This document shows positions 32,205 through 63,780 of a DNA stretch of 64,000 bases, piece after piece. The notes below the pieces were generated by a model that searched no databases, had not been told where the DNA came from, and saw only the letters and a list, made by a program, of their open reading frames with translations. The first letter of the stretch is position 1; each line of letters opens with the position of its first letter. The position numbers were made by a program, and so were the translations under genes. This DNA is from Leidyana gryllorum EB-2025a (Eukaryota; Protista; Apicomplexa): assembly GCA_048772705.1 (NCBI GenBank), contig JBLWGC010000230.1:930001-994000 (forward strand). The letters are read 5' to 3'.

Positions 32205-34792
32205 ATGACAACCATATGGGGCAAATGTGGCAAGTCCAGTAAACAAGCTATCACGTGGTCCTGTGAGAGGGGTAAGTCTCGACACCGTCAGCTAATTATA
32301 CACTCATAGTCAGTACTGGCGAGTGTCAAACGGGCCGTTAACATATGGTGGTGGATTATCTCAAGGTATACAGTCCTCTTCCTACAATCGGTCAGGTTCT
32401 ACTTTGGCTTCTACCATGGCGTGCGCATATGCTTCGATATATTGGGTCTACTGGCTATACACCTCGTCGGCCGTCTTGGCTTACTCCGCCCGTCTAAACT
32501 ACTACTCCGCTTGATCGTGGGCGGACGCCGAGGCCGCCAGAAAGTAAAACTCCATCGCAAGCTGCAACGAGCCGCCACGTACCAGGAATGGTGGGTGTAA
32601 TCCAAATACACAGCCGGATCGATCTTCGTTTGTGTGTGTTTTCTCCACAGGCGGCTGGTTTCAGAGGAGTTGGATGAGGTGACCAACCAACGCGCTTGGT
32701 GCGAAACCACAGACGGCCCCGGCGATAGTCAATTATGCGACTTCGAAGCCCTCAAAACCCACACCGAGCGTCTCCAAGCGGCGCGATATCACCAGAATTG
32801 GCCGGAAATCGCCTTCCTACTACGTGTGTGCTGCAATCGTAACTTTTGCCAAATACGCAATGCCGCACTATACGCGCATTCATTTGTGCACACCAAAAGA
32901 GTCGTTGAAGACTTCTACAATGAAGTGTGTTTGTCACTGGACGCGCTGACAGATGCAACTCTGAATGAAGAGAGGCCCGATTCAAGGATGAGTGAGACTC
33001 CTGCTGGCATTGAAGTTGATCATGCGTTTGTGACCACTCCGGTTTCCCACTCGGCGTCACAAATCGATGATTCTGAGCAATTCGGCGGCGTAGAGCAACC
33101 CGCTTTGAACATGGCAGAACTTTACGATCTGCTCTCGTCCTTGCGACTGTCAATGGGAAGAACAGCCCTCTGTCTCAGTGGTGGCGGAGGCCTCGCTATC
33201 AGCCACTTGGGTGTTATCAAGATTTTGATGGAAATGCGAATGATGCCTCGAGTGGTCTCCGGAAGCAGTGGAGGGGCTCTCATTGCGGGCCTCTTGGCCG
33301 TCACCACAGACGAACAGTTCCAGGAACAGTTCCTCCGCCCGGACTTCCTGGACTCCCGCGCCGTGCAGTTGTGCCCCTCCTTCTGGCAACAAATCAAAAC
33401 CTTCGCCAAAACCGGGCATCTCCTCGACAGCGCCGAGTTTATCCGACTCGCGCGCACGCTCTTCGGAGACTGTACATTCGCCGATGCCTTCGCGCGCACG
33501 GGACGATTTGTTTCCATCACCACCACACCCGCTAGCCGGGGAACTTCGGCAGAACCTCTCGTCTGCAACTGCATCAACACTCCCGACGTCCTCATTTGGA
33601 GCGCTGCCGTAGCTTCCTGCTCGCTCCCTTTAGTTCTCCCCCCCTCCTTCCTATATACAAAGCCGCGCTTCCGATCTCCGCCGCTCCTAACCATTCCTAC
33701 TTCGCGAAGACCCAACCGCCGTCTTACCGGATCGCCCCCGAGCCGACTCATCACGTCGCGCCGGAACTCACTGCGTTCCTCGGGCGATCTTTTAAGCGAA
33801 CCCAGGAGTGAGAGCGGTGGAACCTGCTGGCAGAATAACATCGGCACCGGCTCAACCGCCTCACCCGTCAACGAGCCCTACGAGTTGGCGCACTACGCAC
33901 CCGAGACTATGCGCTTCGTCGATGGCTCCATTCTGCAAGACATCCCCCATACCGAGCTACAAACTCTATTCAATGTCAAATCCTTTGTGGTTTCTCAAGT
34001 CAACCCCCACTTCACCCCCTTTATCTCTGGACCTGCGAGCTACCGGAAGGAAACACGACTGCTCTTCGGTATACTGGATAGCCTATGGAATTATCTCGCG
34101 CTCGACCTCCGCAACAGATACGCGCGGCTCTTGGTGCTCTCACTCGTACCGAGCATCCGGGGCCAAGACGTGTCGCCATTCTTAATGCAAGTGAGTTACA
34201 AGCACCGGGGGCTTCCCGTGGTTCCGTCTGCTCCTCGGCCGCTCAATCAGAAGAGCGACTGATTCACGACCTGTCATTCGCGCGTTTGTGCGCGTGTGCG
34301 CGTGTCTCTGCGTGTCCAGATGTACTGCGTCTCGGCCCCTTCATTCTCCTTTGTTCTGCGCACAGAGTCTTCCGCATTCAGTCTAATCAACGGTGTGTCT
34401 TTTGCAGAGCGCTGAAGGCCATGTTACGATCGTTCCAGCTTCACCTTCTGACTTCTGGCGCTTGACCGCAAATCCCCATCCAGAAGATGTGGCAAGGGGA
34501 CTGAGGGTGGGGGAGCGCAAGACGTGGCCTCATCTGAACAGGTTGAAACACGTGATGATGGTGAGTGACAGACATTGTGTCCTCCATTGGCTCTGCGAGT
34601 GACATTATCTTGTTGTGCAGATTGAAACAAAGTTGCGCAATCTATGGCTGAGAACTGCGGAAATGCATGGCAGAACCTACCAGCAACGCTCCTCACTTGA
34701 AGGTCGGTAAGTATAACATCGATCAAGTAGGGCAGGGCTGCCATCGCCACCGGCCACCACAGAACTGTGTACCGCGACTGGTTTCCGAATGA
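32205..34792 (+). CDS. Patatin-family triacylglycerol lipase (SDP1/TGL4-like), multi-exon
   Basis: AATYQEW..SEELD, GRTALCLSGGG, GSSGG (GxSxG), PDVLIWSAAVASC, DGS, VSQVNPH, GERKTWP. Both ends approximate. Confidence 0.9.
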
Positions 34793-34827: not shown

Positions 34828-36497
34828 CTACTTGAACTCCTTCAACACCGCTGCCTTGAGCGTTGTAAGCAGCGTTCTTCTGATGCCTATAAGAATATAT
34901 ACATGTCACCTCCACTGTTCGCTGGGGCCCACTGGGTGTTCTTCAACACCCACCTATGTTGTAGATTACATTGTCCGTTCTCGTAAGCTGCCGCTACTCG
35001 CACCAACGTTGACCATAAACAATTCACCTGCGTTGGAGATCAGTCTGACTCGAAATGAATAATCACCCACCGTGGGCGCTTTTTCCCACGTGACCTTCAC
35101 ATCTTTCTCAACCGCATTTCGTTGCATATTCAACGCAGCCTCCAGCATTTTATTTGGGGCTTGGAGGTCCTCGGAGTCATCCGTGCACTCAGGGAGAACC
35201 ACCTCAGTGACGCTGTAGCGCATCAAGAAACTTTCTGAGATGGGCATGGGCGCATTAATGACGACCTCATCGACCTCGCGTAAGGCTGAGAGAAAGATCG
35301 TCGAATTCTCTCGCTTCCCTACCGTAAAGATTCATCATTCTCTCAGTCATGCCGAGGACGGGATGTCCTTCCCCGTAAGCTGCTGACGCGACACGGTCCT
35401 CTGCACCCAAAGAAAAATGGTCCCGCAGATCCAGTCCTCGCCTCCTTGTTCCACTCACCATACAGACCAACGATCAGATAGTCGCCCCGGGCTTTGACTT
35501 TCCTCAAAAAGTTTACCATATCCCCTGAAGATGAATTAATTACGTCTGACGACATTGCGCGAAGAGAATTTGACGCGAAGAGGGAACTGGACGCGAAGAG
35601 GGAATCTGATAGTCGCCACGCAACAACGGACAGCGGACAGCGAACATCAATCTTTCGTTTCGATTTAATATCACTCTCTCACCTCGCAATACATCGAATA
35701 CCCCACAAGTATACACTATTTTGCGCCCGTCAGCCCGATCTCGGCAATTGAGGGCACGAGTGGAGCCCACAAACTCCAGAACCCGTCGAGTGTCCAGAGG
35801 CCCAGCAATAGGAACCATCACTTCCGGGTTTGAAAAGGTCGTGTCGTCATTCGACATTCGTAAGAGTCCCGCATGAGAGCTCGCTGACATCGAGGGACGT
35901 GTGTCGGGACTCCTTTCATCTCGTTCCCACCGCTCACCCAGCAATAATCGGCTCAGAATAGCCGTTGAAGAAACTCCATGGGTCCGTCGAAACACTCGGA
36001 ACAACCCTGCTTCCCGAGGCTCTTTATAACAGTCCTGGCCGTCAGCTCCGACGACGAGGTCGTCGCCGTGGGCGACCGCATTACATTTGGCCACATTCAA
36101 CAATTGATGTAAAGAGGTTACATAAGGAGCTCCAGGCAGAGTGCGAGCGACCCATCTACATGAAGCTAAAATGTTAGCTCGCTCTTCGGTATTCAGAATA
36201 GGTACCGAGCCCTTGGCTTCCCAAACTTCGTGGTCTGAGCATCAGTCAGTCAGTCAGTCAGTCAGCGATGCAATGGATCGACACCAGAATCATTCTCTCA
36301 CCGGGATTTACTCCAACACATAGATATTGGCCCAGAGTAGCAGCCTGTCGTATGCCATTTAGATGACCTGAGACGACCAGTGAGCGAACTTGGCTGGGTG
36401 GGGGGGAATTATCACCTGAATGGACCAAATCATAGACTCCGTCGACATATATCCATTCCACCGACTCAGCTACGGTATTGACCACGCAATCTGGCAT
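34828..36497 (-). CDS. PCYT2: Ethanolamine-phosphate cytidylyltransferase, multi-exon
   Basis: YVDGVYDLVHSGHLNGIRQA (HxGH), HGDD, RTHGVSSTAI; second domain IVYTCGVFD..GDYLIVGL. Confidence 0.88.
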
Positions 36498-48177: not shown

Positions 48178-48487
48178 CTAACCACTACCCACAATTATGT
48201 TATTGATTGGAATGAAAAACAGCTTGACCGCGAACCCGATAATGCCCATAGCGAGTAGTCCGAGCGAACAGGCCGTAATCATACTGCGGAATTCTGTGCA
48301 GATTGTATAGAGTCAGTCAGTCAGTTAATCGGTTACCTTTGGTGTCTGGTTTAGTACACATGCGAACCAGATGGACCGAATCGCTGGTGAACTTGTGACC
48401 CGACTGGACGAAATAGCCCAGAGGGTGGCTTGGGTCCTTGAGCATGCCCAAGATGGCGGGAGATTGACTGATCTCGTCGACACCCAT
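48178..48487 (-). CDS. SEC61G: Protein translocon Sec61 gamma subunit; intron 48294-48336
   Basis: DSVHLVRMCTKPDTK/EFRSMITACSLGLLAMGIIGFAVKLFFIPINNIIVG. Not in the ORF track. Confidence 0.95.
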
Positions 48488-48545
48488 GATAAGCCCAAAA
48501 ATGTGGTTCTATATGTAGGTGGGAGAATGGGTTACTAAATATTTT

Positions 48546-48964
48546 TTAGGATCTCCCAGTGATCCCCCTCAAAATGACTGAGATGAAGTGGAGCAACACC
48601 ACCAACACCATAAAGCTAAAGGAACACACGCAAACCATCACCGGCGACCTGCACACACAGTCCAGTAGAACAATGTCGATAGTCAGTCTAACACTTGGCG
48701 ACACTTACAGTTGTAGGCCGCACGCAGATTCAGAGTAATACCTATTGGTCATCTGATCCTTGGCTGGTTGCGATGCTGGCTGGCCTCCTTGCTGAGCACC
48801 TGGCTTTGACCTCCTGTAGACGAAGAAGGATGGGGTCATCGTTGTACTTGACGTCACTCACTTGGTCAGGCCCTTCTGGATAGCCGCATTTGCACCACCG
48901 GATTCGCTGCCCGACTGCGGTGGAAGAATGATGACACGGATTCTAATAGCCAACCACTCACCAT
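48546..48964 (-). CDS. SEC61B: Protein translocon Sec61 beta subunit; introns 48915-48961, 48814-48861, 48649-48708
   Basis: 87-aa spliced product ending RYYSESACGLQLSPVMVCVCSFSFMVLVVLLHFI, matching the Sec61beta motif FYxxxxxGLxxxPxxVxxxSxxFxxxVxxLH. All intron phases are consistent. Not in the ORF track. Confidence 0.88.
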
Positions 48965-49020
48965 TATAGGTCTCTCAACAGGGGTCAGACAGTGGGAAGA
49001 ATCTTTTGCTGTATGTGAAA

Positions 49021-50575
49021 ATGTTATCACTCCTGGGAAACGGTCTGGCAGGTGCGTTAGCCAAATTCCAGCAGGCCAATGATGTGAACGAAGAGGTGAG
49101 CTTCACAGAAGGATCACACACACACGCCACCACCAACTTTGACCCGCAGACCATCGAAGCACTCATCAAGGATGTTTGTACTGCCCTAGTTGCTGCGGAT
49201 GTACAAATCAAGATAGTTGCCACGCTGCGGACTAATGTGCGCAACCGATGTCTCGGCATCAACAACGACTCGCAAAAGGTGGCCGCTGCCCAATTGAAGA
49301 GAAGAGTACAACAAGCGGTGTATGAGGAGCTCATTTCCATCCTCACCCCTCCCAAGACCCGTTACCAACCAGTTAGAGGAAGACCAAATATAATTATGTT
49401 CGTTGGTCTCCAAGGCGCTGGCAAAACCACCACCTGTACAAAGTATGCCAATTACTACAAGAAACGTGGGTGGCGAGTCGCCCTAGTCTGTGCGGACACC
49501 TATCGTGCTGGAGCCTTTGATCAACTGAAACAGAATGCGGCCAAGTGCAAAATACCCTTCTACGGCAGCTACTCTGCCGTAGACGCCGCCGAAGTCGCCG
49601 CCAAAGGAGTCAACCTCTTCAAGAAGGAGAGGGCAGAGATCATCATCGTGGACACTTCGGGACGCCATAAGCAAGAAGAGGCACTTTTTGACGAAATGAC
49701 AGCTATCGACGACGCAGTCGTAAGTCGCACTTTCTGCTTTTCATCCCGCACACCTTCCCGCGCAGCACCCCAACGAAGTCGTCTTTGTCATGGACAGCCA
49801 TATAGGACAGGCCTGTGCTCTACAAGCGCAGGCTTTCAAAGACTCCGTGGACGTAGCGTCCGTGATCGTTACCAAATTAGACGGCCACGCTAAAGGTGGC
49901 GGAGCTATCACTGCAGTCGTAACAACGGGGTGCCCGATTTCGTTTATTGGGACTGGCGAAGGCTTCGATGCTCTGGAAGTCTTCGATCCGCCTGGATTCG
50001 TATCCAAACTCATGGGGATGGGGGACACTCGGACTCTGATGCGCACCATACAGGAATTCATGCCCGAACACAAGAGCGCTGAGACTCTGCAGAGGATCAC
50101 TGCAGGTCACTTCTCCTATGACGACATGAAAGGGCAGCTCAAAACCATGACAACTATGGGAGGTCTGACAAGCATGTTGAACTGTATTCCTGGAATGTCA
50201 GCTCTCAGCGGCGCCATGCCCCCAGAGGTCGCCGATCAAACTAAGAAACTGTATGAGCGGTTCCTTCACATAATTGACTCAATGACTCGTGACGGTAAGC
50301 AACAAAGTCCTGGGGGTACCCACACACGTGTGTGATTCTTGGGATTCACAGAACGCGAGTGCCGAGTAGAGCTGGACGAAAAGGCTATCCAACGATTGGC
50401 TCGCGGCGCGGGAGTCAGAACGGTGGAGGTCGAGGCTCTTGTTGAACAACGACGAATAATGGCGAAAACGATGGGCAAGGTTGGCAAGGGTATGGCAGCT
50501 GCCAAACGGAGTGGCCTGCCCCCTCAACTCATGGAGCAAATGGCTAGTGCTTTCGGTGGTGGTGGTGGTAGATAG
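49021..50575 (+). CDS. SRP54: Signal recognition particle 54 kDa subunit; three introns
   Basis: GLQGAGKTTT, DTYRAGAFDQLKQNA, DTSGR, TKLDGHAKGGGA, FIGTGE, and a Met-rich M domain with IIDSMT and RLARGAG. Confidence 0.96.
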
Positions 50576-50629
50576 AAATATAAAAACGGTCCCGAGAACG
50601 GACCACACCATTAGGCTGACTATCATACA

Positions 50630-53600
50630 ATGAGGCTTAGACTTAGTGCAGCGGCCGCAGCACTATCCTTGGCGCTGAGGGAAGGCCTGCTGCATGCTTA
50701 TGCCTCACCAGCGCCGGTGGTCGGTATTGATTTGGGCAATGAATACATGAAAGTGAGTGGCTTTTATTGTCCTCTGGACCCTTATGTCACGACTTGGTGG
50801 AATAGCTGGCTGCCATCGCCCCAGGCCACAACCTGGAAGTGGTGCTCAACAGTCAGAGTAAGCGGAAGACTCGGTCGGTGATGAACTTTGCGGGAAATGT
50901 TCGTCAATTCGGAGAGGCTGCGTTCGGTGAGACTTGATAAGGGCAGCGAGAAGAATGAGACTCTCTCTCTCTTTCTTTGTGTGCAGCCCAACAGTCCATG
51001 CAGCCGAATGCCACGCTGCAGTACTTCACGACAAATCTTGGCCGTCTGAGCAGCGAGCTGGAGTCTGTCCAGAAGACGCCGAACGGCTTTGATAGCACTT
51101 GGTATCCCTATAGTGTGCGCGATGACAACAACACACGCCACACTGTACGTTACGGAGTTGATTCCAAGGGAAAGTAAGTTGTCTCACCGGGAGTGCATTG
51201 TGGGCCATTTGTTACCGCGCAGGTTGCTATACAACGAGGAATTGGTCTCTCATCTGTTGAGTCACGGCAAGGACTTGCTCCAGGAGCACCTGAAGGACAT
51301 GGAGTACCCGGAAGACACTGAAGTGGAGGCTGTGCTGTTGATTCCGGCGGACTACTCGTATCGTCAGCGTCAACTGCTCCGTCAGAGTGCTCAGATGGCC
51401 GGGTACCACCCGATCGGATTCCTTTACGAGCCCATTGGAGCCGCCCTCTCGCACGCTCTGGATATGCCTCCCCCTCCCGAAACGAATGACACTTCAGGGG
51501 AGTCGAAGGGAGACGGATCCAGTCCCATCTATAAGGCGTTTTACTCTCTGGGGTCGAAGAACAGTCAGATATGTCTGGTGCGCTACCGATATGTCCCGGC
51601 TCCCTCGACACTGAAGAGTGGAATCGGCAAACAGCGCGAGGCTAAGGAGATTTTGAGCATTGAGACGCTTGGCTGTGCCGTGACTCAGGGCACTGGGCTC
51701 GGTGGCCACGCTGTGGATGTGTTGCTCGCAGACGCAGCTGCCAAGGAGTTCTTCGCTCTCAACAAGAGGGTCAAGAAGACAGCCCCAACGGCTCGCTCTT
51801 GGCGTCGGCTCCTCAAGGAGGCGACCAAAATGAAGCACACCCTGTCGACCAACCGAGAGGCCAGTGTGTTCATTGAAGGGTTCGCTGACGGCAAAGATCT
51901 CCGAGTTTCGATTGCTCGCGAGAAATTGGACGCTCTGCTATCCGAATCTGGATATCTCAAAAAAGTAAAGGACATTCAGACAGGTCTCCAGTCTGTATGG
52001 ACGAACTATCAGAAGAATGAAGGGTCGCCGGAGGTGGAGGGGAAGTTGGCCACCGACGTCAATGAACTGATCCAAGATATCGAGCTGGTCGGAGGCGGTT
52101 GGAGGGTCCCGCGTGTGCTGTCAGAGATTGAAAAGACTTTCCAACCAGCTCCGGTTGGGATGAAATGCAATGCCGACGAGGCAATGGCAGTGGGTGCGGC
52201 TATGCAAGCGGCCAACTACTCCAGTACCTACAAGTTCAAGTGAGTCGTCCCTTTAACAAGCCTCGCGCGCGACTGTGTATATCTCACTCGTCTGTTTTCA
52301 GGCCTTTGATGCTCTCCGTTCCGCTCTTCGAGGACTTGCACGTCCAGATGTCATACCGCGACCGCGGCAAAGCTGATGTGGTGGTCGACATTGACTTCCC
52401 CACCGGAACATTGTACGGTACTCAAGTGAAGAAGATATTGATGACGCCCATCTCGTCTGTTCGCGTGGTGGTCACCGACAAGGACAAGCAGGTTTTGGAT
52501 GTTTGGACGCTCGATGGAGCCGATGTGGTTCGCAAGGTGGGCTCTTTTGTAACACTACGACTCCCAATTGTGTCTTACACAGATGGAGGGCGCCGCAATG
52601 GAGGCGGCTGGCAAGCGGAGACGTGAGTATGCCGAGCTCATGTTGGACCCAGAGATCGCTGGTGACGAGACATTGAAACCCGAGTGGCACGATCTCCCCT
52701 CCAACGTTACCATGAAGCCTGAGACAGAGGTGGCTGTGGTCGTCAAGGTGAACAATATGGGATTGATCTCGATCACAAAGGCGGTGGCCTCGTGGCAAGA
52801 GCTCGTGGTGGAGGAGAAGAAGATCGACAAGGTCACCACGACGACCTCGACCTCCACCTCGTCGGCTGGTGAAGAGGAGACAACCACCACCACCAGCCCG
52901 GCAGCGTCGGAGACTACTACGGGCGATGAGTCTGACACCGCGTCCTCGGAGGAGACCTCCTCTACGACTACGACTCCCGCTCCGAAACGGAAGGTGATAT
53001 TCACCGAGTCGATCCAGCAGAGATTCAAAGCTCTGACCATCTCGCCACTCCCGATCAAAGACGACAGTAAAGAGCTGACAGAGGCCGAGATGTCTAAGCT
53101 CAAGAAACCGTACCCCCTGAACCCGAGACAAGTGCGAGACGGCAAGAATGGTCTCAAGACGTACATCAAAGCCGATCGCGAGGCTGAGAGACTGGGAGAG
53201 ATAAGGAATCGGTAAGGAGGAGTGTTGTTGTCGTGGGTGTTCGGGGAGTACTGATTGGTTGGTTCGCACGCAGACTGGAGACTTACATTTATGACATGAG
53301 ATCGAAGCTGAAAGACGAAGAGAACGCGCTCGTCAGAACCAATGCTGCCGCTGTGGTGGAAGGGCTGTTGACCAAACTGCAGGAAGCCGAGGATTGGCTA
53401 TATGAGGAAGGGTTCGCCGCCAACTAGTGAGTGGGAGTGATCATCGTGATCAGACGTTAAACCCTTTTACTATTCAGCAACACGGTGTCGAAGCGTTATG
53501 ATGGTGTCAAGGAGGCACTGGCCGAGGCGGTGTCTCGGGCGGAAGAATACAACGATCGCGATCGAGTTATAGACGGTGCTCGCCTGGACTTGACAGAGAT

Positions 53601-53898
53601 GCGGAAGAAAATGGACAATTTGCGGGTAAGGATCATTGAAGCGCTGCACAATGCAATGTGTACACAGACTGGACGATCGTGGCTGACTGAGGACCATTTT
53701 AGACCTGTGGTCGAGGCTGTGGAGCAGTTTGAGAAATGGTTTGATGAAGCTGTGGCAATGATGCGAAAGCAATCTCCTGATGAGAAGCCGCTAGTCAACA
53801 AAGTGGTCTTGAAGGAGAAGTGGGTGATTGTGAAAGATGCATTTGCTGCTCTGCAGAAGGTCAAGAAACCCAAGGCTTCAACAAAGTCAGAGTTGTGA
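50630..53898 (+). CDS. HYOU1: ER-lumenal large Hsp70 (GRP170/HYOU1/Lhs1), multi-exon
   Basis: Signal peptide, GIDLGNEYMK, LGGHAVD, LSTNREA, ELVGGGWRVP, NADEAMAVGAA, LETYIY and EDWLYEEG; C-terminal KSEL. Confidence 0.88.
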
Positions 53899-53910
53899 TT
53901 TTTTTGCAAT

Positions 53911-54487
53911 ATGCCCATTCAACCAGGAGAGGTATTCCCACCTATATGTCTGGCACTCAAAGGCCAGGACTTAGATCTGAGAGGTAGATTTCAATTCTCT
54001 CCAGGCCTACTGATTGGTGTCACCGGCGCCTTCCACCCGATCTGCTCGAGTGTCTTCTTGCCTGGATACAAGGCCGTCGCCCCCTTCCTTAAAGATCAAG
54101 GCCTCGGCTTCGTTGGCTGTCTATCTGTCAACGATCCCTATGTACTTCGCGCATGGGCCAAGAAACTCAGAGTCACTTCCGAACTGATATTCATTTCCGA
54201 TGTCAACGCCTCACTCACAAAGGTATTGTTCTCCGTTCTCTCGGAAGAGTATCTGTCTGCAGGCGCTTGATATGACTCTGGAGACCGGCGACGACGGGTA
54301 CGGGACCATATTGGCTCGCGGACGCCGGTTCGCCATGTTCGTTGGCGAAGGCGCTATCATCCAGGCTGTGGCCGTCGATGAGGAAGCCACCGCTGGTGCC
54401 TTTGTACCCAAAATCGCGCAGATACTCAACGTCTCTTTACCCGCTTCGCTGAGTATTCGTAAGCCATCTAACACTGAACACAGGTGA
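53911..54487 (+). CDS. Peroxiredoxin-5-family (redoxin) protein with an atypical active site; one intron
   Basis: GVTGAFHPICS, LPGY, CLSVNDPYV..AW, SDVNASLTK/AL, RRFAMFV. Confidence 0.8.
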
Positions 54488-55526: not shown

Positions 55527-56512
55527 ATGGACTCCACATGCCAGGCTTGTGGAAAGAAATATGCTAGGCATGATCACCTGCTGCGCCATATAAGGCTCGC
55601 GCACACGTGTGCTGAAGAGCGTAACTTCTCCTGCCAGCATGCTGGCTGTGAAAAGAAGTTTTATGACAACTCATCATTAAACCGACACGTCAAGAAGGTC
55701 CATCAGAAACGCTATCAGTGCCGTAAGTTTGACTTTGGAATGCAGCAATTGATTTCTCTTGCGCAGGAGCTGGATTTGGTTGTACTGCTCGGTTTGGGAA
55801 AATAAGCCAGCTGCGGAAGCACTTGTGTGCCAAGCACAGCCGGCTTCCTTTCGACACGTTACATCGTTTGTTCCTACAATGCTTGCCTGGCACGCCTGAG
55901 TATCGGGAAGCGTGGGAGAATGTAGGACCGCAGCCGCCAACAGACGGGGTAGATTGCACTAACACTGAGGGAAGCACCACCAAGGGCGGAATAGAGAGCG
56001 ATAGCTCCCAGTCTAGCTCGTATAGGTGCCCCTTCCCAGATTGTGAGCACATTGTACCCAGCTACCGTCAGTTGAAAGAGCATTGGAAACGGCACTTAAA
56101 TCCCTACAAATGCAAGCTTTGCAACACTGCAGTATTCTATTCCTTCAGAGAACTGCAAGATCATAAGAATCGTGAGCATTCGACCTGCCCGATATGCGGC
56201 TTGCGCCCTTCTCACTCCAACATGGCTCGTCATATGAAGACTCACACCGAGGGTGTGGAGAGTACAGGCTCGCCGGACGATGGGCACTATCATTGTGAAG
56301 ATTGTGATAAGATCTTTTCATCTGTCGGTAGTTACACGGCCCACCGTCGCCAGTGTTCGGAGGAAAAGTTTGAGGGTTCTGTTGGGAGTGGGGTTGATAC
56401 CCCTCTCACGATGGATTCTACCCCACTAGCAGATCTCCCAAAGCCGAGTGAGGCGAGTTGTGATATGCTTCTTCATTTTGGACCACCTCGTAAAAAAAGG
56501 AAAGATGCCTGA
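55527..56512 (+). CDS. Multi-C2H2 zinc-finger protein (TFIIIA-like); one intron
   Basis: About 7 fingers, e.g. CQACGKKYARHDHLLRHIRLAH and CQHAGCEKKFYDNSSLNRHVKKVH; C-terminal NLS-like PPRKKRK. Confidence 0.85.
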
Positions 56513-57359
56513 CATCTGCACTCGATACAAAGTTCCGAAGGGGTTCGACACCTCTAAGTTCCTGCCAATATGCCCCGTATGCTCGGACTTTCCTCTCAGC
56601 GAAGAGAACATGAGGAAGATCCTCCCTGAGACTGAGTATAAAGTGATGCGGCTGAAGGAGGACGAGCCGCCCGGTTCTCACCCGTATGTGAGGGAAGATC
56701 GGGAGGGTAATTACCATTGCCGAGGTTGCAACAAGTTGCAGTTCGAGTCGAGTGCGAAGATAGCGGCGACTGATTACTGCGTATTTACTCAATTAAAGGG
56801 GGAAGTGACCAAGTTCCCTGCCGAAGGCGACAGCATAGTATGCGAAAAATGCGAGTGCTATCTGGGACGGGAGGAAGTATTGGAAGACGGGGAGAAAAGA
56901 TATTATGTAAATGGTGCAGCCTTACAGTTTTACCCCATGAAGCCGGACACACCCCGTCAGTTCCCTGTTACTTTGTCCGAGGAGGAGTGGAAGGCGAAGA
57001 TCGGAGACGACGTGGCCTTTGCTGTTCTACGCCACGCCGAAACCGAAGCACAGAACGCATCGCCCCTGACCGATAACTTTGAGTCTGGAAAGTATTACTG
57101 CAAGGGATGCGACAATTTGCTCTTCGACTCCAAGGACAAGTTTAGAGCAACATGTGGGTGGCCGAGCTTCTGTCGCCCAGCGACACCGGAAGAATCGTGC
57201 GGGTATGACTTTGACTACAAGCGTGGATTCCGACGGATTGAGGTGCATTGCAACCGTTGCGGAGGTCATCTTGGCCATCGATTCAACGACGCTCCTGATC
57301 AGCCAACGGGTGAACGTTTTTGCATCAATGGGGTGTGCCTGAAATTCGTCCCTGAATGA
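56505..57359 (+). CDS. msrB: Methionine-R-sulfoxide reductase with tandem MsrB domains (N-terminal one degenerate)
   Basis: C-terminal domain: YYCKGC, CGWPSF, RIEVHCNRCGGHLGH, RFCING. The N-terminal repeat keeps CxxC...CxxC only. Confidence 0.92.
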   Translation: MPDICTRYKVPKGFDTSKFLPICPVCSDFPLSEENMRKILPETEYKVMRLKEDEPPGSHPYVREDREGNYHCRGCNKLQFESSAKIAATDYCVFTQLKGEVTKFPAEGDSIVCEKCECYLGREEVLEDGEKRYYVNGAALQFYPMKPDTPRQFPVTLSEEEWKAKIGDDVAFAVLRHAETEAQNASPLTDNFESGKYYCKGCDNLLFDSKDKFRATCGWPSFCRPATPEESCGYDFDYKRGFRRIEVHCNRCGGHLGHRFNDAPDQPTGERFCINGVCLKFVPE

Positions 57360-58312
57360 AACTGATTTTAAGTGTGATTGTGCTCGAGGGCATATTTGGT
57401 AGTATTGTCGACCAGGTCCCGCACTGGAGCGTAGATGATCTGGTCCAAGCTGACTGTCCCAGAAATCATCATATCTATCCAACCTGTGCACATTTCTGTG
57501 AGAATCATCACCAATGGCGTACCCTAAGAGAGCTGGACGAGAGCTCATGCGGTGGAGTTTTACCTGTAGATTACGAAATCCTTCTCCGGCGGAAACGCGG
57601 GCATTGGCCGGTGAATGCAAGTGAAGTGCGAGACATTGGGGATCGCCAGTCAAGATTCCTGGTGGACTTTAGATTCACTCATGCGAACTATAGTGACCCT
57701 GGCTCGATAGACGAAGTCACCATCAATCCGCACAGGCGTAACCATTACTGCAAGTGGTCCAATTATGCGGCCTACGAAGTGGCTATGGACGATTTCGAGT
57801 GCACTGTCACCACAGGTGCCAACCGATGCTCAGCTCGCCGACCCTTCACCAATGCTGAGATGCGGAAATGGTTCATTCAGGATTGGCCGAACGATGTTTG
57901 GTATGAAGGGCTGCTGACCGATGAAGAGAATTTTATTGCCCACTTTAATGTAACCCGCCATGTCGTCACCAATCACACAAGGGCTCTTCAAGATGGATTG
58001 CTCATAGAGAGACGCGGGTCAGAAACCCAAACATGTGTGCCTCCACGGGACGAAGCGGGTTGGGTGGAGGTAATCGATAGAGCATGGGTCTCAGGATCTA
58101 ATTGGTGTGGTTCCATCACCGACTGCTACCAATGTCAGACTGCCATCAATTGCGACTGGTGTCTAACTCCTTCATATGAGTACAAGTGTGTTGACTACTG
58201 TTTGGATCCCTGGAAGGCGAGTACCACTTGCGATTCAGCCTCTGGCCATCGCCCAATAGTCAGTGCAGCAATCTTTGTCCTCGTCCTTAGCTCAGCGTGC
58301 TTCTTAATCTGA
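57356..58312 (+). CDS. Secreted, probably GPI-anchored Cys-rich surface protein with a C-terminal PSI-like domain
   Basis: Signal peptide MKLILSVIVLEGIFG; CGSITDCYQCQTAINCDWC...C; hydrophobic C-terminus preceded by SAS. Confidence 0.65.
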   Translation: MKLILSVIVLEGIFGSIVDQVPHWSVDDLVQADCPRNHHIYPTCAHFCENHHQWRTLRELDESSCGGVLPVDYEILLRRKRGHWPVNASEVRDIGDRQSRFLVDFRFTHANYSDPGSIDEVTINPHRRNHYCKWSNYAAYEVAMDDFECTVTTGANRCSARRPFTNAEMRKWFIQDWPNDVWYEGLLTDEENFIAHFNVTRHVVTNHTRALQDGLLIERRGSETQTCVPPRDEAGWVEVIDRAWVSGSNWCGSITDCYQCQTAINCDWCLTPSYEYKCVDYCLDPWKASTTCDSASGHRPIVSAAIFVLVLSSACFLI

Positions 58313-63012: not shown

Positions 63013-63780
63013 TTATATCACATTGTGTCCATTTGCCAGTGGCAACAGCTTCGCAACCTGAAACCAAAGTCTCACCCAAACGCGGCCTCCCACTCACCAT
63101 ATTCGATATGCGATTCAGCGACTTGGCGCCATCGGCCTCCTCAACACAGCAGCAGCCTGCACCTACGTACGGGAACTTCACCCGTACCCCCAGTACGACT
63201 AAATCCTGTGAGTCGTCAGGTGAATACCAACGGGTATCATTAGGCAACCTGAATCAGCCAGCAACCAGTCGTCAGCTAACCACAAGCTTCCCGAATACCA
63301 ACTCACTGGCGGTGGAACAAATTGAATAACTCTTGAGCCGTCCGCGAGACACAAGCACCGTGAACCTTCTTCTCCCGTTCAAAGCTCTCAGCAGCCTCCG
63401 CCTCCCGATTCACAGCAGCCTGCTTTGATGGAGGACACAGAGGTAAATTTGGAAGCTCCGCCTTTGCGGAACCAGGCTCTGCGGCCCCCATTTGATCTAT
63501 CAAATCCGCTCCGACAAAGTAGTAATTAGACTTGCCCGGAACCGTTCCATTTTCCCCTGCAAAGTAAACCCAATCATAATGCTGCAATTCTAACCAGCTT
63601 ACGTAAAATGGCCAGGCCCGTGGGGCCATTTACTGCTTCCTTTGCCTCGTATGTACAAAGCGTACCGGTCAGCGAAGTGCCAGAAGTCAAATGGGCCGTA
63701 ACGCGTCCTGCATTCTCAATCAAATATCGGTAACCAAAGGGAAACCTACCACCAATGGGAGGAGGGGCGTTGGTCGCCAT
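63013..63780 (-). CDS. LSM12: LSM12-like protein (Sm fold plus anticodon-binding domain), multi-exon
   Basis: Sm-like strands SGTSLTGTLCTYE; VSRTAQELFNLF.., RW..., LVVLGVRVKFPY; last exon VAKLLPLANGHNVI*. Confidence 0.75.

Follow-up and report, generated by a model that had tools for sequence, protein, structure and literature searches.

Why should the genes for non-homologous components of one housekeeping pathway stand side by side in a eukaryotic genome? To our knowledge, clusters of this kind are rare in eukaryotes. The question is raised by a 64,000-nucleotide stretch of the gregarine Leidyana gryllorum EB-2025a, called the window here (positions 930,001 to 994,000 of contig JBLWGC010000230.1 in assembly GCA_048772705.1; G000:C230:930001-994000 in our numbering of the 15.5 Mb genome of 237 contigs, which was searched as a whole). 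At positions 48178-53898 of the window, the genes for Sec61gamma (minus strand), Sec61beta (minus), SRP54 (plus) and a GRP170-like chaperone (plus) follow each other directly. All four are intact, occur once in the genome and belong to the machinery that imports proteins into the endoplasmic reticulum (ER). A preliminary description took them for an operon-like module. We give an even chance to a different account, according to which the block was inherited from the common ancestor of a clade of eugregarines, Sec61beta and SRP54 share a divergent control region, and the arrangement persists through the cost of breaks in the spacers together with a benefit of co-expression.

Gene models and junctions were read by hand from the sequence, and spliced models were searched exon by exon. 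Sec61gamma (48178-48487), a member of the SecE/Sss1 family, consists of two exons (48487-48337 and 48293-48178) that are separated by a 43-nucleotide phase-1 intron. The protein has 88 amino acids from the first ATG and 74 from the Met codon at 48445, and the latter start fits the N-terminus of the Gregarina niphandrodes protein better in the alignment. Sec61beta (48546-48964) is encoded by four exons (48964-48962, 48914-48862, 48813-48709 and 48648-48546), of which the first consists of the ATG only, and the product is a tail-anchored protein of 87 amino acids. Its stop codon is 58 nucleotides from the Sec61gamma ATG, or 100 nucleotides if Sec61gamma begins at Met 48445. The divergent spacer between the start codons of Sec61beta and SRP54 has 56 nucleotides (48965-49020) and is flanked by the first introns of the two genes (48961-48915 and 49096-49149). 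SRP54 (49021-50575; exons 49021-49095, 49150-49719, 49766-50294 and 50352-50575) encodes 465 amino acids with N, G and M domains. Its stop codon and the ATG of the GRP170-like gene, again as read from the sequence, are separated by 54 nucleotides (50576-50629). The latter gene (50630-53898) has eight exons (50630-50752, 50806-50926, 50987-51173, 51223-52239, 52302-52536, 52583-53211, 53274-53426 and 53478-53898) and codes for a 961-residue, putatively ER-lumenal protein of the Hsp70 superfamily, similar to GRP170/HYOU1/Lhs1. In the reading of 48178-53898, no further credible gene was found between the four. The contiguous order that had been reported for four intact genes, with spacers of 58, 56 and 54 nucleotides, was thus recovered upon re-reading, and the identities proposed for the genes were all confirmed by domain and homologue searches.

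The two Sec61 subunits are short and interrupted by introns, and their identification rests on several kinds of matches. In exon-wise phmmer searches, exon 2 of Sec61gamma matches solved Sec61gamma chains with E=1e-6 (residues 27-61 of 62), and exon 1 matches them with E=1.5e-3 (residues 6-31 of 68), so that the two matches abut. Against the SecE gene of G. niphandrodes, the product of which carries PF00584, the exons show 49-67% identity in tblastn (E=2e-13 and 3e-10). Exon 2 alone reaches 15.5 bits with Pfam, below the cut-off of 22.7 bits, because the intron splits the domain. With the cytosolic helix motif CTKPD and the C-terminal transmembrane segment IPINNIIVG, the small, tail-anchored protein has the features of the SecE family (PF00584), and it is the sole SecE match in the whole genome.

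In Pfam, the last Sec61beta exon matches Sec61_beta (PF03911) and nothing else, with 15.8 bits and E=0.015 over model positions 19-40 of 41. As it represents half a domain, this exon falls short of the 27 bits required of a whole one. The last exon of the G. niphandrodes gene described below behaves equivalently (E=0.017). A search of the PDB with the single exon returned noise only. A profile built from the two last exons, of the window and of G. niphandrodes, finds only Sec61beta/Sbh1 chains in the PDB, with E=4.6e-4 and 1.9e-3. The product is a tail-anchored protein, with a motif and transmembrane anchor that fit the family model, and we assign it to Sec61beta on these grounds. At the other end of the gene, the ATG exon (48964-48962) is directly followed by GTGAGT. 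An exon of this kind is needed because the frame of exon 2 lacks an ATG. The ATG-only exon had been part of the preliminary gene model, and it is supported by the Sec61beta gene of G. niphandrodes, in which the ATG is likewise directly followed by a donor site (GTAAGC). As a separate observation, the sequence ATGGTRAGT has four occurrences in the window where 0.84 would be expected, a count that is reached in 2 of 100 shuffles. The three sites other than that of Sec61beta (34558-34566, plus; 35453-35461, minus; 63092-63100, minus) may be further introns right behind start codons.

SRP54 is identified without difficulty. Across exons 2-4, all three Pfam domains score above the cut-offs, namely SRP54_N (6e-9), the SRP54 GTPase (4.9e-40 and 8e-21) and SRP_SPB (2.3e-10 and 1e-4). 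Exon 2 is 55-69% identical to other gregarine SRP54 sequences, the best named relatives are eukaryotic SRP54 proteins, and the gene is the sole cytosolic-type copy in the genome.

The GRP170-like protein matches Pfam HSP70 with 6.7e-23 and Hsp70 nucleotide-binding domains of the PDB with about 1e-16. The 961-residue model is colinear from end to end with a 917-residue protein of Gregarina sp. Poly (P0273; E=1.7e-113), and also with a 933-residue gregarine orthologue (P0272), for which HYOU1/Grp170 clusters of the Atlas are nearest (score 0.96-0.97). The Hsp70 nucleotide-binding domain, the length of more than 900 residues and the extended C-terminal part place the protein in the GRP170 family. 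The N-terminal leader (MRLRLSAAAAALSLALREGLLHAYA, followed by SP) resembles a signal peptide as judged by eye, and the C-terminal KSEL departs from the canonical KDEL-type retrieval signal, to which the KQEL of one orthologue conforms; the other orthologue ends in NPEL. The C-terminal exons and the orthologues gave nothing beyond HSP70 with the local copy of Pfam, from which HYOU1_C (PF27508) may be missing. The Hsp70 family as such is strongly expanded in this genome, with 34 exon-level matches, and much of it is arranged in three tandem arrays, each with 5-8 or more copies on the same strand (C104:1252-1268 kb, C2:201-211 kb and C230:1579-1594 kb).

Is the arrangement peculiar to this genome? 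With SRP54 exon 2 as the query, relatives were found by a representative search, and their gene context was then looked up. In a quick SRP54 tree, the window organism, Gregarina sp. Poly (69% identity), the organisms behind the Logan contigs L001 and L003, and G. niphandrodes form a single clade with a Shimodaira-Hasegawa-like approximate likelihood ratio test (SH-aLRT) support of 100. The SRP54 gene of Gregarina sp. Poly lies on NODE_46, a contig of 17.8 kb. On G. niphandrodes KK211489.1 (locus L002, GCA_000223845.4), SecE (minus), Sec61beta (minus) and SRP54 (plus) stand in a row. The Sec61beta gene of this species (L002:9668-9976, minus) is absent from the deposited annotation, and lies in a seemingly empty gap of 368 nucleotides between SecE and SRP54; the gene set of G. 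niphandrodes is corrected here by its addition. It is composed of three exons, the ATG alone, an exon of 34 codons and a transmembrane exon (SPIVVVVSSLVFMMTVVSLHFFAVIYRLMTRD), and shares its architecture with the window gene. The start codons of Sec61beta and SRP54 are only 24 nucleotides apart. Immediately before the SRP54 ATG, the spacers of both species contain TTT[G/-]CTGTATG (window 49003-49015; L002:9977-9990). With 10 occurrences in the window, where 5.45 would be expected, the heptamer CTGTATG is not enriched, and the likeness of the spacers may be due to chance. The single intron of the G. niphandrodes Sec61gamma gene (L002:9360-9500, minus) is packed with about eight tandem copies of an 18-nucleotide unit (cacaccagtgcgcagtcg); the window intron at the equivalent position is free of repeats.

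The other half of the block recurs in a third gregarine, the SRP54 of which is 63% identical to window exon 2. In the Logan contigs L003 (from SRR10829746) and L008 (from SRR10829749), SRP54 is followed after 24 nucleotides by the 933-residue GRP170 orthologue. Absence of the linkage from relatives, which the preliminary description had named as evidence against its reading, is therefore not what was observed: gamma-beta-SRP54 is found in G. niphandrodes and SRP54-GRP170 in the third gregarine. The synteny, for which it had suggested a comparison across a wider range of organisms, is present in part, in at least these two related gregarines, and missing in Cryptosporidium hominis (L004) and Besnoitia besnoiti (L009), where SRP54 has neither a Sec61 nor a GRP170 neighbour. 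No Sec61 or GRP170 gene was seen beside SRP54 in L005 and L006, the ciliate-like L007, L010, L011 and 55 metagenome loci either. Small open reading frames (ORFs) upstream of SRP54 in L005 (68 amino acids) and L011 (78 amino acids) were considered and are not Sec61 subunits. In L001 there is no ATG directly followed by GT upstream of SRP54, which is uninformative as only about 120 nucleotides are present there. In C. hominis (CM098024.1; L004:6355-9503), a 344-residue gene of the KDEL-receptor family (ER_lumen_recept) immediately precedes SRP54 on the same strand, a pairing of ER-pathway genes that differs from the gregarine one.

The third gregarine also bears on the question of joint transcription. 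SRP54 and GRP170 lie in L003:1-4572 and L008:1-4146 without any intron, and both contigs stop about 300 nucleotides past the GRP170 stop codon. The SRP54 intron after VNEE is common to the window, L001 and G. niphandrodes, and cDNA is therefore the probable source of the intron-free contigs. If so, they would show RNA that is continuous across the SRP54-GRP170 junction. Such RNA is what one would expect of a true operon, in which one central bidirectional promoter drives dicistronic beta-gamma and SRP54-GRP170 mRNAs and all cistrons are translated. There is a precedent for polycistrons in a compact apicomplexan genome with same-strand neighbours tens of bases apart: Cryptosporidium parvum makes polycistronic transcripts of 2-4 genes, in which about 10% of its genes are included, and its bidirectional promoters are numerous (bioRxiv 10.1101/2025.01.17.633476). 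The likeness has limits, since the SRP54 gene of C. hominis is not beside Sec61 or GRP170, and the window cluster is known from DNA. Moreover, SRR10829746 and SRR10829749 could be RNA or DNA libraries, an assembler can merge overlapping transcripts of single genes, so that a joint contig is no proof of a joint RNA, and the terminal ORF of L003 is followed by GTGAGT, which suits genomic DNA as well as unspliced RNA. By the same logic, finally, the Prx5-like gene 12 nucleotides downstream of GRP170 would have to be counted as a member. Altogether, we regard an operon in the strict sense as quite improbable.

Could the grouping be accidental? Tandem duplication as its origin, already dismissed in the preliminary description, is excluded as the four families are unrelated. 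A relic of a prokaryotic operon is rejected as well, since three of the proteins, Sec61beta, SRP54 (the M domain of which is eukaryotic) and GRP170, belong to eukaryotic types. If 6000-9000 genes stood in random order and 15-40 of them served ER import, 1e-7 to 1e-5 four-gene runs would be expected (about 1e-6); with any class of this size admitted, the expectation rises to about 1e-3. For one genome, the grouping of four genes is thus significantly beyond chance. The calculation has to be read with the proviso that the cluster was chosen after the fact, out of a very large scan, and that gene order is inherited, so that the three organisms amount to one event.

The surroundings of the block provide a second yardstick. 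Apart from the trio of Sec61gamma, Sec61beta and SRP54, no window genes were found in the 10 kb to either side of SRP54 in G. niphandrodes. The neighbours that SRP54 has in that species are scattered in the window genome, with the NatA auxiliary subunit at C230:119 kb, RNase HII at C230:1264 kb and PITH on other contigs. This holds with two qualifications, an eIF5-like gene that is 8 kb from RNase HII and a conserved divergent pair with RPL13. Otherwise, gene order around the cluster is scrambled between the two genomes. Compared with G. niphandrodes, two of two adjacencies are kept inside the trio and one or two of six outside it, with a chance probability of 0.03-0.11 on a baseline of only about six adjacencies. 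These figures suggest that the trio is conserved beyond the background. The conserved pairs that were inspected closely are both head-to-head, which fits with the notion that a very short spacer shared by two divergent genes makes them difficult to separate. Independently of the cluster, it is of note that NatA, SRP54, RNase HII and the eIF5-like gene are at most 10 kb apart in G. niphandrodes, and that all four are on C230 in the window genome (at 119, 979, 1264 and 1273 kb), up to 1.1 Mb apart. This suggests reshuffling within, rather than between, chromosomes.

Several observations weigh against a special status of the block. Short spacers join unrelated genes just as they join the four import genes. 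The Prx5-like Redoxin gene (53911-54487, plus; Pfam Redoxin 5e-10 from ORF residue 6), which is outside the pathway, has its ATG 12 nucleotides behind the GRP170 stop codon (spacer 53899-53910). On the other side, a micro-ORF is located 84 nucleotides beyond Sec61gamma, with V-ATPase A another 143 nucleotides on, and the ORFs 56448-57359 and 57356-58312 overlap at stop and start codons. The spacing comparison relies on junctions read by hand, as the gene map based on codon bias is too noisy for a distribution of intergenic lengths. Tight spacing is the genome-wide norm, and therefore no evidence for an operon, so that the absence of anything between the four genes, noted in the preliminary description, does not mark them as a unit. 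None of the flanking genes (DEAH helicase, Mpp10, V-ATPase A, Prx5, a C2H2 zinc-finger protein, MsrB and an ERCC4 nuclease) is ER-related. Sec61alpha and the SRP receptor, which the preliminary description had wished to see placed, map outside the cluster, Sec61alpha to contig C180 and SR-alpha to C92, and both are unlinked to it. In G. niphandrodes, the downstream neighbour of SRP54 is the NatA auxiliary subunit and not GRP170; the GRP170 link is lost in this species and hence dispensable. RPL13 and a 528-residue protein form a divergent pair that is kept in both genomes although it has nothing to do with the pathway, and the microsynteny baseline is small. Finally, the polycistron genes of C. 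parvum are without clear functional grouping (bioRxiv 10.1101/2025.01.17.633476), a point in which they differ from the gregarine cluster.

Many of these observations would also be accounted for by a neutral relic, in which chance neighbours in an ancestral gregarine were kept together by few rearrangements or little time and by spacers that resist breakage, without any regulatory benefit. Spacing that is tight throughout the genome, the conservation of the unrelated RPL13 pair, the departure of GRP170 in G. niphandrodes without apparent harm, the absence of the cluster from Cryptosporidium and Besnoitia, and the post hoc choice of the finding all speak for it. The small random-order expectation for four neighbours from the same pathway and the otherwise scrambled gene order speak against it. 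We consider a neutral origin and maintenance a real possibility, although a somewhat doubtful one.

The account that we prefer, inheritance of the block with shared divergent control, takes the geometry of the locus as its starting point. The Sec61beta and SRP54 genes are arranged head-to-head, their ATGs lie well within the distance of about 1 kb that is used to define bidirectional pairs, and the arrangement is conserved across species. As the start codons are 24-56 nucleotides apart, the promoters and 5' untranslated regions (UTRs) of the two genes must overlap, and to judge from this geometry it is very likely that they have a shared divergent control region. Control sequences of Sec61beta and of SRP54 would then probably reside within the first exon and intron region of the respective other gene, which may account for the conservation of the ATG-only exon together with its intron. 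At the same-strand junctions of 24-58 nucleotides, again for geometric reasons, transcripts would have to overlap or read through, as for most neighbours in this genome. The simplest history would have an ancestral gamma-beta-SRP54-GRP170 block in the gregarine clade, with later loss of the GRP170 link in G. niphandrodes. The clade presumed to carry the inherited block would comprise the window organism, Gregarina sp. Poly, the L001 and L003 organisms and G. niphandrodes. Two reasons for its persistence can be suggested. Breaks in the spacers would sever genes from their control sequences, and co-expression of import components is probably useful.

A stronger version can be formulated, in which the genes form a secretion-entry regulon under selection, and a minimal divergent region between and inside the first introns co-drives beta and gamma in one direction and a dicistronic SRP54-GRP170 RNA in the other. 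We think that this version is unlikely, if somewhat less so than the strict operon.

Comparison with known systems helps to place the inherited block. The GAL1-GAL10-GAL7 cluster of Saccharomyces and other yeasts serves a conditionally induced metabolic pathway and has mapped upstream activating sequences and spacers of hundreds of bases. Like the gregarine block, it consists of at least three adjacent non-homologous genes of one pathway, two of which are divergent and share a control region (in the gregarines, a deduced one), is conserved in related species and did not arise by duplication. In contrast, the gregarine cluster is made of housekeeping import components, has spacers of 24-58 nucleotides and is known from its sequence. 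In microsporidia and nucleomorphs, transcription overlaps into neighbouring genes and introns occur right behind the start codon. The gregarine locus resembles these genomes in having spacers that are too short for UTRs and promoters, and introns at the very beginning of genes. The neighbours are arbitrary there, whereas in the gregarines they share a pathway, and their arrangement is conserved between genera. The operons of nematodes and trypanosomatids also contain close same-strand genes, and the gregarine genes are possibly co-transcribed as well. However, these operons depend on spliced-leader trans-splicing, and the gregarine unit includes a divergent pair.

What the locus demonstrates is that three to four ER-import genes stay together across gregarine genera amid reshuffled surroundings. 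Should the secretion-entry regulon be real, it would constitute a conserved, functionally coherent, operon-like unit of housekeeping genes in an apicomplexan. The block also offers a small and concrete locus for asking how ultra-compact apicomplexan genomes place their promoters, and it bears on whether genome compaction favours co-regulation at the level of a pathway.

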